Below, in pieces: positions 31,147 to 36,980 of a stretch of 64,000 bases of DNA. Position 1 is the stretch's first letter. Each line of letters opens with the position of its first letter. The notes beneath the pieces are model-generated. The model saw nothing but the letters and a program-made list of their open reading frames with translations, did not search any database and was not told where the DNA came from. This DNA comes from Rebecca billardiae RCC1528 (lineage: Eukaryota > Protista > Haptophyta), in assembly GCA_965240325.2 (NCBI GenBank), contig OZ251251.1:868001-932000 (forward strand). Direction: 5' to 3'. Made by a program: the position numbers and the translations under genes.

Positions 31147-31403
31147 GGCTCCGTGCGCTGCCTCCGCGTGCAGGGCCGACCGGCACTCGTCCTTACTCTG
31201 AGGTCAGCAGCCGAGTAGCCGACTGCCAGCACGGACGTTGACGGCTGCCAGAGTGTCAGGCGGCAGGCCGAAGAGTTCCTGCTGCAGCATTTTGCGGATC
31301 GGAATTCCAATGAAGCCGTGATGGCCGTCGGCCGGACTGCCGGCGGACGCTCGGGCGTTGGGCGTTGGGCGTTGGCAGACGTGGCCGCGCGGATCTGGAT
31401 TTG

Positions 31404-32585
31404 ATGATGGCTTCCGCCGCCGCAAGCAGCCGCCGTCCGCCACCACTCATGCCCACGCCACCAGCCTCGCGGCCGAGGGCGCGCGCGGTGCTGCTGCTGC
31501 TCGGGCTGGCGGGCGCCGAGCTGGCCCGTGCGTCCGGGCCATGGCTCACCCAGCCCTCCCGCCCGCTGGCCACGCCCGGCGCGCGCGGCGCGCGGCCGAT
31601 CGGCACGGCCGCGCAGCTCGCGCGCGCCGCCGCGCGCGCCGAGGCCGAAGAGGGCGGCGACGGCGAGGACGACCCCGAGGCGGAGTACGTGCAGCGCGTG
31701 CTCGACGTGCAGCGGGCGCTGCGATTCGCCGAGGAGGCGCGCGCCCGCCTCGCCGAGCGCGCCGCGACCGGCGTGCGCGCCGGCGGCGCCGGCGCCGGCC
31801 CGGGCGCGCGCGCGCGCCGGCCGCCGGGCGCGCGCTCGCAGCTCTCGTACACGGACGCGGGCACGCTGGTGCTCGAGGTGCCGCCGACCGGCGGCGGCCC
31901 AGGCGCGCCGGGCGTCCTCTTCGGCGGCGCGTTCAGCCTCGCGTGGTTCTCCGCCATCGGCTCGTTCACCGCGGCCGCGCTCGCGAGCGCCAGCCCAGTG
32001 GGCGTGCTCTTCTCAGCGCCCTTCTGGCTGGCGGGGGCGGGCGTGGTGAAGAGCGCGGTGCTGGAGCCGTCGCTGCGCACGCGGCTGAGCGTGGGCACGT
32101 ACGCGTGGAGCGTGGCGAGCGAGCTCCCGCTCCGCGCGGGCGTGCGCGTGCGCGGCGCCGAGGGCGCCACCGCCGACATCGAGGCGGTGGCGGTCGTGCC
32201 GCCCGCCACCGAGTACGGCGCGCGCGGCGGCGGCGGCGCGGCGTACGCGGGCCGCGGCGGCGGCGCGCGCGCGTCGGTGGGCGTGGGCGTGGGGCTCGTG
32301 GGGCCGGGCGTGTGGGTCGAGCAGCAGGACGGGTACGCGCCCGACGCCGAGCCCGCCGCCGCCCTCGTCCTCGTCGTCCGCCAGGGCGGCGGCGGGTCGG
32401 GCGGCGGGTCGGGCGGCGTCGGCGCCGGCCGCGTGGAGGAGGTGGCGCTGGGGCAGGGGCTGAGCCGGGCGGAGCTCCAGTGGCTGGCGGAGGAGCTGGG
32501 CGAGCACGTGCGCCGCGCGCAGCAGAGCGCCGGGCTGGCGGAGGACGACGACGCCGGGCTGGGCGAGGACGACGACGCGGTGTGA
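31404..32585 (+). CDS. Signal-peptide (possibly plastid-targeted) membrane protein resembling the C-terminal membrane region of cyanobacterial Ser/Thr kinases
   Basis: Hydrophobic leader AVLLLLGLAGAELARA, LVLEVPP, two TM segments (FSLAWFSAIGSFT; LFSAPFWLAG), terminal GLSRAELQWLAEEL. Confidence 0.6.
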   Translation: MMASAAASSRRPPPLMPTPPASRPRARAVLLLLGLAGAELARASGPWLTQPSRPLATPGARGARPIGTAAQLARAAARAEAEEGGDGEDDPEAEYVQRVLDVQRALRFAEEARARLAERAATGVRAGGAGAGPGARARRPPGARSQLSYTDAGTLVLEVPPTGGGPGAPGVLFGGAFSLAWFSAIGSFTAAALASASPVGVLFSAPFWLAGAGVVKSAVLEPSLRTRLSVGTYAWSVASELPLRAGVRVRGAEGATADIEAVAVVPPATEYGARGGGGAAYAGRGGGARASVGVGVGLVGPGVWVEQQDGYAPDAEPAAALVLVVRQGGGGSGGGSGGVGAGRVEEVALGQGLSRAELQWLAEELGEHVRRAQQSAGLAEDDDAGLGEDDDAV

Positions 32586-33442
32586 CGGCGCGGCGCGCGG
32601 GCTGCGCGGCGTGCGTGGTGACGCGGAGGGCCTCGTGGCCGCGTGGCAATGACACAATCGGCGCGGGGTACCGGGTAGGCTGCGCGCGCCTCTCAAGTCT
32701 CGCCTCTCGAGGCGCCGCGGCCCGTCGTCGCCACACGCGGGCCACCTCTCACTCTCTCAGACCGTCTGCCACTCTCACATCTGCATCTGACGACGACAAC
32801 GAAGTATCGTCGCGTAGCAATCAAGACTCGGAAACGCGTACTGCTAGAGCTTCAAACAGATTAACAGTACCGTCGTAGCAATCAAGACACGGCTTACTGC
32901 TAGTGGTTTCGGGATACGTTATGAGAGCTCATCGATGGATGGGTGGTGATTGGGTTCGGGGCGGAACAATCACTTTAAGCTCCAACCGCGCTCGATGGCA
33001 TTGCTGTTGTATCGTTTGAAACGGTACATGGTACAGATACAACCTCTGAGATCGCGCCGAGCTCAGTTTTGTGTTGGAAGCCATCGAACGCACGGTTAAA
33101 GCCACGGGGGTGATGGGCTGACTTCTGAATATTGTACTACATCATTTGGTGGTTGTCATGGCCGCGTCAGACACGGCAAGCCCGCGGCCATACGTGAGCG
33201 ACGATGAATGATGGGAATGATTCGAAGACAATACTGTACAGCGCAATCCCAGCGTCGAGATCATAGCTCAAATGGCCAGGACTCGAATGCCCATGAAAGC
33301 CAACGACGTCAAGAAGTCACTCGAACGTGATTGCTATGCGAATGCGGGTGTCGTTTTGCATGCTCGAAGTTGGCAACGGATCGGTCCCCCACGAGCGAAG
33401 GCGCGCACATCAACCCACCCAACCTCCGCACGCCCGACGACC

Positions 33443-36145
33443 ATGTTCGGGCTGGTGCACGTCGTACTCAAAGACCTCGTCGAGCGCGCGCGCGGCGCGG
33501 GCGCGTGGCGCGCCGTGCTGCGGCGCGCCGGCGTCACGGACGACGCGCCGCTCCTCCAGCTCGCGCAGCACGCCGACGAGCTCACCCTCGGCCTCGTGCG
33601 CGCGGCCGCCGCCGAGCTCGAGCTCGACGACGACGACGCGCTGCGCGCGCTCGGCGCGGCGTTCGCGCGCTACGTCGCGGTGGGGTCGACGCACCGTCGT
33701 CTCCGCGCGATGGGCGACACGTTCGTCGACTTCCTCGACCACGTGAACGCGCTGCACAGCGCGCTGGAGACCGTGTACCGCCACTCGAGCCTGCCCTGCT
33801 TTGCGCTGCGCGCCGCCTCCACCGCCGACGCGCCGGCCGACACCGACCATCGCGCCGAGCACGGGGGGGCGCAGGCCGTCGAGCTGGCGTACTCGTCGAC
33901 GCGAGGCGCTCGGCTCGCGCCCATGGTCGAGGGCGTCCTCGTCGAGATCGCCGCCGTGCTCCACGCGCAGCGCGTCGAGATGCGCCGCATGAGCGCCGCC
34001 GACGCGCGCGCAGCCTTCCCCGGCGCGGACGCCGCGTGGCACGTCACGGTGGCGCCGCCCGAGCGCGCGCCTGCGGGCGTGGTGGGCGGCGCGCCGTCGA
34101 ACGCGCCGCAGCCGCGCTCGGCGGCACACGCGCGCGCCGCCGCCTCGTGGCACAGCGTGTTCGCGCGAGGCCAAGCGACCGTCGCGCCGGAGCCGTCGCA
34201 CGCGCGCACTGCGGAGGCGGCGGCGGCGGCGGACGCGGAGGCGGAGGCGACGCCGGCGGCGCGCGAGGGCTGGCTCTCCGCCCTCGCGCGCAGCGTGCGC
34301 ACGCGCGTCGTCCTCGGCTCGCTCTCGCGCACGGCGCTCGCGCCACGCCACCGCGCCTCGCTCAGCGGCCGCGGGTGCGCCGCCTCCGCCCCGCCGCCCG
34401 CGCTGGGGCTGGCGGACCGGCTGATGCGCGCCACGCCCGCGCCGCTGCTGTGCGCCGACTGGGAGGAGGGGCCGGCGCTGGCGCGCGCGCGCGATTTCTG
34501 GGCGGCGTCGAGCAGCCGCGCCTCGGACTACGCGCTCTCGCAGCCGGCGGAGCACGCCGACTTTTTTGTCTCGCACGCATGGGCGCCGCCCGACGGCTTT
34601 GCGGAGGCGGAGGGCGCGCGCTGCTCGTACGCAGCGCTCAAGGCGACCGCGCTGCGCGCCGCGCTGCGCGAGGCGTGCGGCGAGGCGCGCTGGCGGGACG
34701 CGACGCTGTTCGTGGACAAGGCCTCGATCCCGCAGGAGCCCGCGCTCAAGCAGTACTGCATCGAGCACCTCCCGGACTTCACGCTGCGGTGCGAGCGCAT
34801 GCTCGTGCTGCTCTCGTGGCACTACTTCAGCCGGCTGTGGTGCGTGGTGGAGTGGGTGACCTTCCTCGTCTCGCACGGGCCGGAGGCGCTGCGCGTGTGC
34901 GTCGCGCCGTTCATGCGCTCGGCGAGCACCACGCGCCGCTTCGTCGAGAGCGTCGAGCACTTCACCGTCGCCTCGGCGCAGTGCACACACGCCGCCGACC
35001 GCGACGTGCTCACCGCGCTCGTGTCCGCGCGCTACACCTCGGTGGCCGCCTTTGAGCGGTACGCGCGCGCGACCGCGCTCGCGCTGATCGCGCTCGACCT
35101 GTGCCGCCCGGCCTCGCGCGCCGAGAGCGCGCGCGCCGAGCTCTTCGAGCCGTGGCTCGCGCTGGCCGCCCGGCTGGGCGAGGAGCACCTCGTGGCGGCG
35201 CTCGCGGAGGGCCACGCCCGCCTGCTCGGCTGGCGCCGCGCCGCGCTGGCCGGCGCCATCGCCGCCGCGTCGCCCTCCTCTGCCGACGGCATCGGCGTGG
35301 CGCCCGAGTGGCAGCCGCGGTTCGACTCGCTCGTGCAGGAGTGGTACTGCCGCGCGCTCTTCCCGGCGCTGTGCGCGATCAAGAAGGCGTGCGTGCGGCC
35401 CGAGCTGCAGACGGTGGCGGCGCTGCGCGCGCGCGGCACGGGCGGGCAATGCCCTGAGCTCGCGCTGTGCAGCCCGGCGGCGCACGCGCCCGTGTTCAGT
35501 CTCACGCGCCCGAGCGGCGCATCGCCCGAGGAGGAGGCGCCAGACGACGCGCTCTCGGCGGCGGGCACGAGCCTGTGCGCGAGCAGCCCCGGGTGTGGAC
35601 GCCAACCCGCGCCCGGCAGCGGCTTGGTCGGCCAGCGCTCGCCCCTGGGCGAGCTCGAGCGCGCCACTCGGCGCGAGGCGCTCGTGGAGGTGAGCGCCAT
35701 CCTCTCCGCGGCCGACGCCAGCTCGCCGCACGCGCAGCGACGAGTCGGCTCGGACCCGTGCCCGCGCACGCAGTGGTGGCAAAGCCTGGACGCCGGGTCG
35801 AGCGCGTCTGCCATGCCCAGCGGTGCGACGAGCCGCCGCCGCGTGCGCTGCGCCAGCTGGGAGCAGCGCGCCGCCGTCGCCAAGCAGGTGGGCTCGGCGC
35901 TCGCCACCGCCGTCATGCCCTCGCGCGGCGAGCCGCGCGGCGGGCCGCGGCGCCGCGCGCGCGGCGGCAGCAGCGGGGTCTTCTTCAGCTCCGCCTCCTC
36001 GCCGACGAGCGTGCCGGCGGACTCGCCACTGGGCGGGGCGGGCGGTTATTCGCCACCGTCGCTCGGCGCGCACGCCGGGGGCCCGCCGTGGCTGCTGGTC
36101 GACTGTGAGGCGTCCGATGAGCCAGATGACGACTGCCACTGCTAG
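33443..36145 (+). CDS. H-NOX (HNOB heme NO/O2-binding) domain fused to a TIR-like domain
   Basis: N-terminus MFGLVHVVLKDLVE..GAWRAVL, MGDTFVDFLDHVNALH (proximal His), LPCF, YSSTR (YxSxR, 33890-33904). Downstream DFFVSHAW, LFVDKASIPQ, MLVLLSWHYFSRLWCVVEW. Uninterrupted ORF. Confidence 0.85.
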   Translation: MFGLVHVVLKDLVERARGAGAWRAVLRRAGVTDDAPLLQLAQHADELTLGLVRAAAAELELDDDDALRALGAAFARYVAVGSTHRRLRAMGDTFVDFLDHVNALHSALETVYRHSSLPCFALRAASTADAPADTDHRAEHGGAQAVELAYSSTRGARLAPMVEGVLVEIAAVLHAQRVEMRRMSAADARAAFPGADAAWHVTVAPPERAPAGVVGGAPSNAPQPRSAAHARAAASWHSVFARGQATVAPEPSHARTAEAAAAADAEAEATPAAREGWLSALARSVRTRVVLGSLSRTALAPRHRASLSGRGCAASAPPPALGLADRLMRATPAPLLCADWEEGPALARARDFWAASSSRASDYALSQPAEHADFFVSHAWAPPDGFAEAEGARCSYAALKATALRAALREACGEARWRDATLFVDKASIPQEPALKQYCIEHLPDFTLRCERMLVLLSWHYFSRLWCVVEWVTFLVSHGPEALRVCVAPFMRSASTTRRFVESVEHFTVASAQCTHAADRDVLTALVSARYTSVAAFERYARATALALIALDLCRPASRAESARAELFEPWLALAARLGEEHLVAALAEGHARLLGWRRAALAGAIAAASPSSADGIGVAPEWQPRFDSLVQEWYCRALFPALCAIKKACVRPELQTVAALRARGTGGQCPELALCSPAAHAPVFSLTRPSGASPEEEAPDDALSAAGTSLCASSPGCGRQPAPGSGLVGQRSPLGELERATRREALVEVSAILSAADASSPHAQRRVGSDPCPRTQWWQSLDAGSSASAMPSGATSRRRVRCASWEQRAAVAKQVGSALATAVMPSRGEPRGGPRRRARGGSSGVFFSSASSPTSVPADSPLGGAGGYSPPSLGAHAGGPPWLLVDCEASDEPDDDCHC

Positions 36146-36211
36146 TGAAGTACGCGCGCCCCACCTGGCCCTGCTTTCGTAGCGCAGTGAATAACCTATC
36201 GTCGAATGAGA

Positions 36212-36238
36212 AATATATATATATATATGTATATATAT
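36212..36238. repeat. (TA)n microsatellite
   Basis: Directly visible; lies at the left boundary of duplicated block A. Confidence 0.8.
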
Positions 36239-36980
36239 GACCGCGTTCCGCGGTCTTTTTCCGTAGAACGAACGTAGTTCGGGGCCCGCGGCGCACCCTC
36301 CGTCGGCTGCTGTCTCAGTCTGACATGTGTAACAGTTCGCCTGAGCTGCCACCGCCAACTCAGTCACTGCCGCCCACCGGGCCGGCGGGCCGAGGACTGT
36401 CGCCGCGGGTCCGCGGGCCGCCGCGGGGACTAGCGGCCGGCGCGCGCGCGCAGGCAGGGCGAGAGGCGCTGGCGCGGCGCGAGCCGGCGCGTGCGCGCGA
36501 GCGGGCGCACCTGCTTGAGGTACTCGCCCTGCGCCATGCGCTCGACGACGGGCCGCTGGTCGCTCGTGCCGGCAGAGCGAGAGCGCGCGCCACTGCTGGC
36601 CCCGGCCTGCCGGCTGCGCAGCCTCGCACCGAGACCGACCGAGCGGAGCTCGGGGCGGTGGAACGAGGCGAGCGGCGCGTCGCGCCTGCCGCCGCGCGTG
36701 CGCGCCTGCTCCACCGCGCCGCCGTGCTCGCCCGCCGCCTCCTCCGCCGCGTCGGCCTCGAAGACGGCGGCTGCCAGCGGCAGGCTGAGCCGCGCGCCGG
36801 CTCACTCACACTGTGAGTCACACCCGCGGTCGCCTCGACAGCCAACTATCCACAGCTGCTCGAGCTGCTGGAGGGCGCCGCGACGATGGCGGCGCGGGCG
36901 CCCAGCGCGTCCGTTGCCGCGTCGCTCAGCTCGTCGAGCTCGGCGCCGCACTTCGCCAGCTTGGCGCCTAGCGCCTCCGC
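36235..36980. repeat. Segmental duplication copy A (partner 38504-39280)
   Basis: Colinear similarity from 'atatgaccgcgttccgcggtc' to 'agcgcctccgc', with indels. Confidence 0.9.

Follow-up and report, generated by a model that had tools for sequence, protein, structure and literature searches.

In soluble guanylate cyclase (sGC), an N-terminal H-NOX domain (short for heme nitric oxide/oxygen-binding) is followed by an HNOBA/PAS region, a coiled-coil and a class III cyclase, and bacterial stand-alone H-NOX proteins have their partners (kinases, enzymes of cyclic di-GMP (c-di-GMP) metabolism) encoded nearby. The gene that we describe here lies in a 64,000-nucleotide stretch of the haptophyte Rebecca billardiae RCC1528 (contig OZ251251.1 of assembly GCA_965240325.2, positions 868,001 to 932,000; the whole stretch is called the window below) and differs from the bacterial arrangement in placing sensor and effector in one chain, in which an H-NOX domain precedes a domain of the TIR superfamily. 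Judged from sequence and structure prediction, this is a real, undescribed sensor-effector variant, for which we propose a hypothetical function in nitric oxide (NO) signaling.

Comparison with Described Effectors

The best profile and structure matches of the second domain are TIR domains with NAD+-cleaving (NADase) activity, namely those of SARM1 and of plant TNL and TIR-only proteins (RPP1, RUN1, RPPT-TIR, SNC1). Strands and helices follow one another in the same order, Glu470 of a W-C-x-x-E motif in the R. billardiae protein lies over the Glu of WCLDEL in plant TIRs, and SARM1 likewise carries a regulatory ligand-binding domain N-terminal to its TIR. Set against these NADase TIRs, the present domain is only 13-18% identical in sequence, scores below the Pfam TIR cut-offs, has a long insertion in helix A and a C-terminal helical extension of ~100 amino acids (aa), and comes without NB-ARC/LRR or ARM/SAM partners, its proposed regulator being a heme gas sensor. 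We know of no report of a heme gas sensor as the regulator of a TIR domain.

The fungal HET domain (PF06985) is a death-inducing domain of ~220-240 aa and a remote relative of TIR whose activity is listed as not determined (PMC10197012, PMC12881547), and it induces cell death when expressed alone (PMC12881547). The second domain of our protein has a similar size (~240 aa), most of its relatives give sub-threshold to significant HET matches over the first two motif blocks, and HET is likewise a modular death/effector domain fused to varied sensors. In contrast to fungal HET proteins, the R. billardiae protein has no HET match of its own, its family is algal, and HET has not been described together with H-NOX.

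In the haptophyte Gephyrocapsa huxleyi, TIR genes are induced in virus-resistant cells, and the usual companions of TIR, the NBS (nucleotide-binding site) and LRR (leucine-rich repeat) domains, are reported to be absent (PMC12489294). These TIRs keep a conserved putative catalytic Glu and are implicated in defense or cell death; they were found with Pfam TIR models, some have extracellular or transmembrane N-terminal regions, and no H-NOX domain is mentioned (PMC12489294). The present family differs from them in falling under the Pfam TIR models and in carrying H-NOX.

The H-NOX Domain

The N-terminal part of the gene has the following features (coordinates are those of the window):

33443..36145, + strand: complete coding sequence, 900 aa plus TAG stop, one unbroken frame, apparently intronless
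33443..34057, + strand: H-NOX domain, aa 1-205 (Pfam HNOB, PDB matches, model)
33443, + strand: MFGLVH start
33755..33757, + strand: His105 in NALH, candidate proximal heme ligand, aligned with Nostoc His105 and invariant in 34/34 relatives
33794..33796, + strand: Pro118 in LPCF, the conserved H-NOX proline, aligned with Nostoc Pro118 and invariant in 34/34 relatives
33803..33871, + strand: lineage-specific insertion of 23 aa (121-143), alignment occupancy 0.37, gapped against the Nostoc H-NOX, predicted local distance difference test (pLDDT) score <50 at 136-138
33890..33904, + strand: YSSTR (aa 150-154), the Y-x-S-x-R heme-propionate motif, aligned with Nostoc YQSTR (Y134/S136/R138)
33923..33925, + strand: Met161, an apolar distal-pocket position aligned with Nostoc Met144

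By profile, key residues and predicted fold, the N-terminal half is a bona fide H-NOX domain. Its match to Pfam HNOB (PF07700) is far above chance (72.8 bits against a cut-off of 25.5, E 3.9e-20), and its best sequence matches in the PDB are the H-NOX of Nostoc sp. PCC 7120 (E 4.7e-11) and sGC beta1 (E 3e-8). With these two proteins it has in common the proximal His105, Pro118, the Y-x-S-x-R motif and an apolar distal pocket. In a full-length alignment with 34 relatives, M1, G3, H6, W22, D45, G71, H105, P118 and R154 are invariant, and the three named positions of Y-x-S-x-R hold Tyr in 33/34, Ser or Thr in 32/34 and Arg in 34/34. An AlphaFold model of aa 1-670 (mean pLDDT 83, predicted template modeling score (pTM) 0.83) has the N-terminal H-NOX fold of sGC beta1 and of the Nostoc protein (Alr2278; 24% identity), with a TM-score (TM) of 0.89 and a root-mean-square deviation of 2.8 Å to 2o09 and a deviation of 2.4 Å to human sGC beta1; the 50 best PDB structure matches of the model are, without exception, H-NOX domains or sGC subunits. 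The complete H-NOX domain that a preliminary description had read from the bare sequence thus stands, with its His, Pro and Y-x-S-x-R residues in place.

The ligand is suggested by the distal pocket. The position aligned with Nostoc Met144 is, we take it, the site of the distal Tyr140 that enables O2 binding in the Thermoanaerobacter H-NOX, and here it is apolar and has no Tyr; an NO/CO-type sensor is therefore favored. That the domain senses O2, CO or the redox/oxidation state of the heme, or is merely a structural heme-binding module, we consider very unlikely. O2 sensors do exist among H-NOX domains, ligand selectivity is not fixed by sequence alone, and the 23-aa insertion is peculiar to the lineage; against this, position 161 is occupied by L, F, V, I or M in all 34 relatives and by Tyr in none, and the solved proteins closest to it are the NO/CO-type Nostoc H-NOX and sGC beta1 rather than the O2-binding one from Thermoanaerobacter.

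What follows H-NOX is not what follows it in sGC. Pfam finds neither an HNOBA (PF07701) nor a guanylate cyclase (PF00211) domain in the protein at E<=1, as the preliminary description had also concluded, and the sGC layout of HNOBA/PAS, coiled-coil and class III cyclase is absent by the same measure; the output is a TIR/HET-like domain.

The TIR/HET-like Domain

The core of the second domain and its motifs are placed as follows:

34538..35032, + strand: TIR/HET-like core, aa 366-530, with motifs FFVSHAW, FVDKASIPQ and YFSRLWCVVEW (profile, model and structure searches)
34562, + strand: FFVSHAW
34709..34735, + strand: FVDKASIPQ, aa 423-431
34802, + strand: segment LVLLSWHYFSRLWCVVE, which contains W-C-V-V-E and, within it, Glu470
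34850..34852, + strand: Glu470, candidate catalytic Glu near the start of helix C, conserved and aligned with the plant TIR Glu

An exhaustive phmmer search with aa 350-590 as the query against 1.84 billion cluster representatives returned 901 relatives at E<=1e-3 and 143 at E<=1e-10. Word-indexed searches with the domain region and with the family profile returned nothing; Ala/Arg-rich words likely swamped their candidates, so that this result is uninformative beside the 901 relatives found by phmmer. An alignment of 57 sequences of the domain resolves four motif blocks (F-V-S-H-x-W, W-x-D-K-x-C-I-P-Q, Y-F-x-R-L-W-C-V-Y-E-W and C...D-R), in which W466, C467 and E470 are invariant, and Glu470 is kept in 32 of the 34 full-length relatives. 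When the profile of this alignment is run against all PDB sequences, the 17 best matches are TIR domains throughout, among them the plant TIRs RPPT and RPP1, TLR10, SIGIRR, the IL-1R family, Cat1, Roq1, SNC1 and full-length RPP1. The family motif RLWCvyE falls on SSWCLDE of the plant TIRs 7xoz (a chain named ADP-ribosyl cyclase/cyclic ADP-ribose (cADPR) hydrolase) and 5teb (the RPP1 TIR domain), Glu on Glu, and in the TLR10 TIR the Glu of WCHYE is likewise matched by Glu470. The alignment thus places a helix-C Glu in a W-x-x-x-E context, as in NADase TIRs, and the residue that had been singled out from the sequence (34850-34852) does align with the catalytic Glu of plant NADase TIRs.

Among the 57 aligned sequences, three Pfam families recur: TIR_2 in 47 (best E 9.9e-7), HET in 44 (best E 4.3e-5) and TIR in 34 (best E 9.5e-6), every other family matching at most two. 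In the inspected examples the HET matches span the first two motif blocks, and the TIR matches span helix B, strand C and helix C. For the R. billardiae protein itself, NCBIfam FxsC_Nterm ('TIR-like') matches at E 0.0012, and Pfam HET gives no match at E<=1 either with the whole protein or with the domain alone.

A model of the second domain built on the 57-sequence alignment (pLDDT 96.1, pTM 0.92) predicts strands A-D alternating with helices A-E in TIR order, the fifth strand being reduced to a single bridge residue, and three further helices after the TIR-like core. In Foldseek searches of the PDB nothing but TIR domains appears among its top 44 matches, with probabilities of 0.57-0.99, E-values from 5e-3 and a TM by target of 0.34-0.49, and among Swiss-Prot models the matches are plant TIR-NBS-LRR proteins (TNLs) and BdTIR. 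Foldseek-seeded alignment with VIA-align gives Z 8.7 to RPPT-TIR (132 residues, 4.1 Å), 8.1-8.2 to MyD88 and 7.9-8.1 to SARM1, with aligned lengths of 132-140 residues; the 50 top rows are all TIR domains. A wide structure search independent of Foldseek ranks nine TIRs first (Z 8.1-6.7), followed by nucleoside 2-deoxyribosyltransferases, ThsB and SEFIR. Nucleoside 2-deoxyribosyltransferase, SLOG and SEFIR folds were considered and set aside, as they rank under the TIRs (Z <=6.7, 6-10% identity) and show no motif alignment. Fold clusters of AFDB contain close relatives at TM 0.83 together with many others, labelled automatically now as 'TIR domain-containing', now as 'Heterokaryon incompatibility domain-containing'; 'Gcy-36 protein', the label of one 498-aa entry, presumably reflects its H-NOX.

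Since the matches are unanimous, cover the whole core and agree with the sequence at the level of motifs, we regard the predicted placement of the second domain in the TIR superfamily as sound despite moderate Z-scores. It is best called TIR/HET-like, between TIR and the fungal HET death domain, because it misses the Pfam TIR score, has the TIR fold and Glu, and is tied to HET through its relatives only. The TIR-like domain of the preliminary description is accordingly kept as to fold, with a flavodoxin-type TIR architecture in a high-confidence model and TIR domains ranked first by Foldseek, and qualified as to class, with scores below the Pfam TIR cut-offs.

The HET resemblance raises the question of chemistry. 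The domain might be an H-NOX-gated death domain of the fungal HET type, or a nuclease or 2',3'-cyclic nucleotide monophosphate (2',3'-cNMP) synthetase, and not an NADase, which we hold to be quite unlikely. In favor of it are the 44 of 57 relatives with Pfam HET matches, the related clusters automatically named after heterokaryon incompatibility, the agreement of the N-terminal motifs of relatives with HET profile positions 4-84, and a domain length of ~240 aa, as given for HET (PMC12881547); relative P0063 comes near the HET cut-off (21.3 of 22.5 bits). The lack of any HET match in the R. billardiae protein speaks against it and, as HET is a distant relative of TIR (PMC10197012), such chemistry would overlap with NAD+ cleavage by a TIR-type active site and would not exclude it.

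A second alternative is that the TIR/HET-like domain is no enzyme and acts by ligand-controlled homotypic or heterotypic assembly, as in MyD88, TRIF and MAL, recruiting other algal TIR/HET-like proteins. The TIRs of MyD88, IL-18Rbeta, TRIF and TIRAP score near the NADase TIRs (Z 7.8-8.2), and the large family includes many domain-only proteins that would be potential partners. We nevertheless judge a scaffold unlikely: across more than 50 divergent sequences, Glu470, W466 and C467 never or hardly ever vary, which suggests an active site and not an interface only, and it is plant NADase TIRs that match best in both sequence and structure.

Distribution of the Fusion

Among the best 150 of the 901 representatives (clusters at 50% identity), a local hidden Markov model search finds the H-NOX half in 47, nearly always from residue 1 and upstream of the TIR/HET-like domain, so that the fusion is present in at least 47 such clusters. 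Open reading frames (ORFs) from transcriptomes of relatives hold both domains (MMETSP P0003, P0004 and P0061, and EukProt Trinity ORFs, one of them shown as 'complete'), and therefore the two domains lie on one mRNA in those relatives. The fusion is real and selected, and it is common in marine phytoplankton, a large family and not a one-off. The combination of H-NOX with a TIR-like domain in one protein that had been proposed for this locus is thereby borne out, in relatives as well as by the continuous frame considered below; the search for the same architecture elsewhere shows that it recurs, and also that the family was already present in sequence databases.

A quick, unrooted maximum-likelihood tree was computed from 103 sequences of the domain. 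The 42 domains linked to H-NOX all group within a single subtree of 65 rows with a Shimodaira-Hasegawa-like approximate likelihood ratio (SH-aLRT) of 93, and a clade linked to EF-hands and ion channels stands directly outside it at an unresolved fork. This pattern is only suggestive of one fusion event followed by radiation.

Other partners of the TIR/HET-like domain are EF-hands, a voltage-gated-type ion channel with EF-hands, and C-type lectins, with weak matches to FIST and Tudor; as read from sequence, the pattern of partners is that of an effector module coupled to interchangeable sensors. The relatives P0037 (1130 aa), P0063 and P0059 combine the domain with EF-hands, with or without an Ion_trans channel, which suggests that they are Ca2+-gated equivalents of the H-NOX fusion. 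In the quick tree they form a well-supported clade immediately outside the H-NOX subtree.

Judged by its Atlas clusters, the family is found chiefly in Haptophyta; one of these clusters is an HNOB cluster with 89 members, proteins of 774 aa, and one relative is named from Haptolina ericina. The AFDB accession series of further members are ones that we take, provisionally, to be those of Symbiodinium, Emiliania, Chrysochromulina and Perkinsus. Neither IMG/VR viral contigs nor prokaryotic genomes, one for each species, yielded a relative in scans limited to the family motifs, which is weak evidence for a family restricted to eukaryotes.

Full-text literature searches found no paper in which H-NOX or HNOB occurs together with TIR, and no published description of the fusion, in agreement with the preliminary description, which knew of no characterized H-NOX-TIR architecture. 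A full-text search extended to heterokaryon incompatibility and NADase returned no H-NOX paper among the top 12 matches listed, and no H-NOX-TIR protein is described among the matches listed for H-NOX and algae. In a sample of 14 relatives, precomputed Pfam annotation records PF07700 only in 13 and nothing in one. This HNOB-only annotation explains how the architecture came to be overlooked, and Pfam-based TIR screens would for the same reason miss the fusion proteins.

Proposed Mechanism

Between and beyond the two domains, the chain is organized as follows:

34175..34399, + strand: poorly conserved linker, aa 245-319, predicted disordered (pLDDT <50)
34400..34537, + strand: conserved N-terminal extension of the second domain, aa 320-365, with LMR..V and FW motifs and invariant W353 (pLDDT 85-97)
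35033..35437, + strand: conserved helical extension after the core, aa 531-665, including the D.WF..V.P.L helix (helices 534-665 at pLDDT ~90 or more; conserved to ~aa 650)
35438..36142, + strand: low-complexity, copy-specific C-terminal tail, aa 666-900 (coding GC content at third codon positions (GC3) 0.91-0.95)

Conserved elements between the domains comprise W199, H237, the L-M-R..V segment and F352-W353. In spite of the 75-residue disordered linker the model of aa 1-670 reaches its pTM of 0.83, which suggests that H-NOX packs against the effector half.

With a probability of roughly 0.55, we read the protein as an NO-sensing H-NOX domain that gates a TIR/HET-like effector, most likely for NAD+ cleavage via Glu470. 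This reading, drawn from sequence and predicted structure, can be laid out as a series of steps:

(i) The protein would act in the cytosol as a single-chain sensor-effector, its H-NOX domain binding heme through His105 and the Y-x-S-x-R motif.

(ii) The gas sensed by the H-NOX domain would be a diatomic one, and NO is the likeliest, given an apolar distal pocket without the Tyr used by O2-binding H-NOX proteins.

(iii) Ligand binding would shift the conformation of H-NOX, and the shift may be relayed to the TIR/HET-like domain via the conserved linker elements at aa 227-242 and 320-365.

(iv) The packing, self-association or active-site access of the TIR/HET-like domain would thereby be altered.

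(v) The TIR/HET-like domain would then cleave NAD+ or a related nucleotide with Glu470, and the outcome would be NAD+ depletion or a signal derived from ADP-ribose (ADPR) that may feed stress, defense or cell-death responses.

A number of observations weigh against an NO-gated NADase. The TIR_2 score is 13.7 bits for the whole protein (E 0.089) and 16.4 bits for the domain alone (E 0.013), against a cut-off of 28. Single E-values of the family profile against PDB sequences are marginal (0.0018-0.07), though wholly one-sided, and structural similarities of Z ~8 and TM 0.4-0.5 lie in a range that the tool itself grades as 'middling'. This copy also carries W423F and C428S, two substitutions at nearly invariant positions beside strand B (in 32-33 of the 34 relatives, W opens the segment that reads F-V-D-K-A-S-I-P-Q here and C stands sixth), which could weaken activity. 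The predicted contact between H-NOX and the TIR/HET-like domain has the pTM of the model as its single source. Many Glu-bearing TIR domains are scaffolds and not enzymes, and the HET domain, to which the similarity is equally great, has a biochemical activity that is listed as not determined in a 2025 review (PMC12881547).

Biological Context

NO production is a hallmark of early lytic viral infection in the haptophyte Emiliania huxleyi (PMC6461841), and in Gephyrocapsa huxleyi bacterial NO sets off a cascade resembling programmed cell death and the collapse of the population (PMC10356946). Neither paper names an algal NO receptor, and the terms H-NOX, heme, guanylate, 'NO sensor' and receptor do not occur in the latter (PMC10356946). 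TIR domains, for their part, are coming into view as antiviral candidates in algae (PMC12489294). The fusion could supply the connection from NO to algal cell death that has been missing. With a heme NO sensor and a TIR/HET effector on one polypeptide, it joins observations on NO, TIR and HET into one testable pathway, and NO perception in the death and defense of phytoplankton, a long-standing question, becomes directly testable. It would also offer a simple ligand-controllable system for TIR/HET activation and would extend eukaryotic H-NOX signaling beyond cyclic GMP (cGMP). If the proposed function is true, this would be, to our knowledge, the first eukaryotic H-NOX output other than guanylate cyclase. 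The fuller proposal, that the family is the first gas-gated TIR/HET enzyme, in which NO directly switches NAD+ cleavage or an ADPR-derived signal, and that it supplies the missing NO receptor for NO-triggered death and antiviral responses of haptophytes and other marine phytoplankton, we put forward tentatively, as a possibility that we would sooner doubt than assert.

Coding Evidence

The window is GC-rich (56-87% in 2-kb bins). Long ORFs in very GC-rich DNA are by themselves no proof of a gene and, as they are such weak evidence, codon-position composition was examined. The ORF at this locus spans 33272..36145 (+). In the frame of the gene, GC3 is 0.91-0.99 from 33422 to the stop, with GC3 > GC1 > GC2, whereas the in-frame 5' extension upstream of the gene has a GC3 of just 0.75; the entire 900-aa frame is therefore coding. 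No drop in GC3 occurs at the junction of the H-NOX and TIR/HET-like halves, both flanks of the gene have a lower GC content than the coding sequence, and relatives align collinearly with the protein over aa 1 to ~650. The single intronless ORF of the preliminary description is upheld by this uninterrupted frame, and MFGLVH, the NALH His, the LPCF Pro, YSSTR, FFVSHAW, FVDKASIPQ and the Glu, as quoted there, were all verified in the sequence.

That the one protein is a misreading of two neighboring genes, or of an ORF arisen by chance in 75%-GC DNA, we regard as next to impossible: although spurious long ORFs are usual in such DNA and an antisense ORF overlaps the locus, the GC3 signal is unbroken across the domain junction, and dozens of relatives, some of them complete transcriptome ORFs, have an equal collinear two-domain layout with conserved linker elements. 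The antisense ORF (1131 aa, 33410-36805, -) overlaps the entire gene; it was set aside as a gene, with the GC3 signal and all homology belonging to the + frame, and is taken to be a by-product of stop-poor, ~75%-GC coding DNA.

Translation likely starts at 33443, in the context acgaccATGt, and not at 33272. The methionine at 33443 opens the M-x-G found at residue 1 in all 34 H-NOX-bearing relatives of the full-length alignment, and the ATG at 33272 was ruled out by the GC3 of 0.75 there and by all relatives beginning at the H-NOX Met.

At the other end, the 235-aa tail is rich in Ala, Ser, Gly and Pro and finishes with an acidic D-D-D-C-H-C; Pfam finds no match in aa 666-900, and relatives stop or diverge after ~aa 650 and have no counterpart of it. 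The TAG stop (36143-36145) is followed by AT-rich sequence. Within the AT-rich stretch directly after the stop lies an imperfect (TA)n microsatellite (36213-36240, +), which contrasts sharply with the GC-rich coding sequence; it is probably part of the 3' untranslated region or of intergenic DNA.

The 64-kb window contains no paralogue of the H-NOX-TIR/HET gene. Upstream, an ORF of 406 aa (31365-32585, +) overlaps several spurious-looking GC-rich ORFs; it is Ala/Gly-rich, with hydrophobic stretches that could be membrane segments, and may be a neighboring gene.

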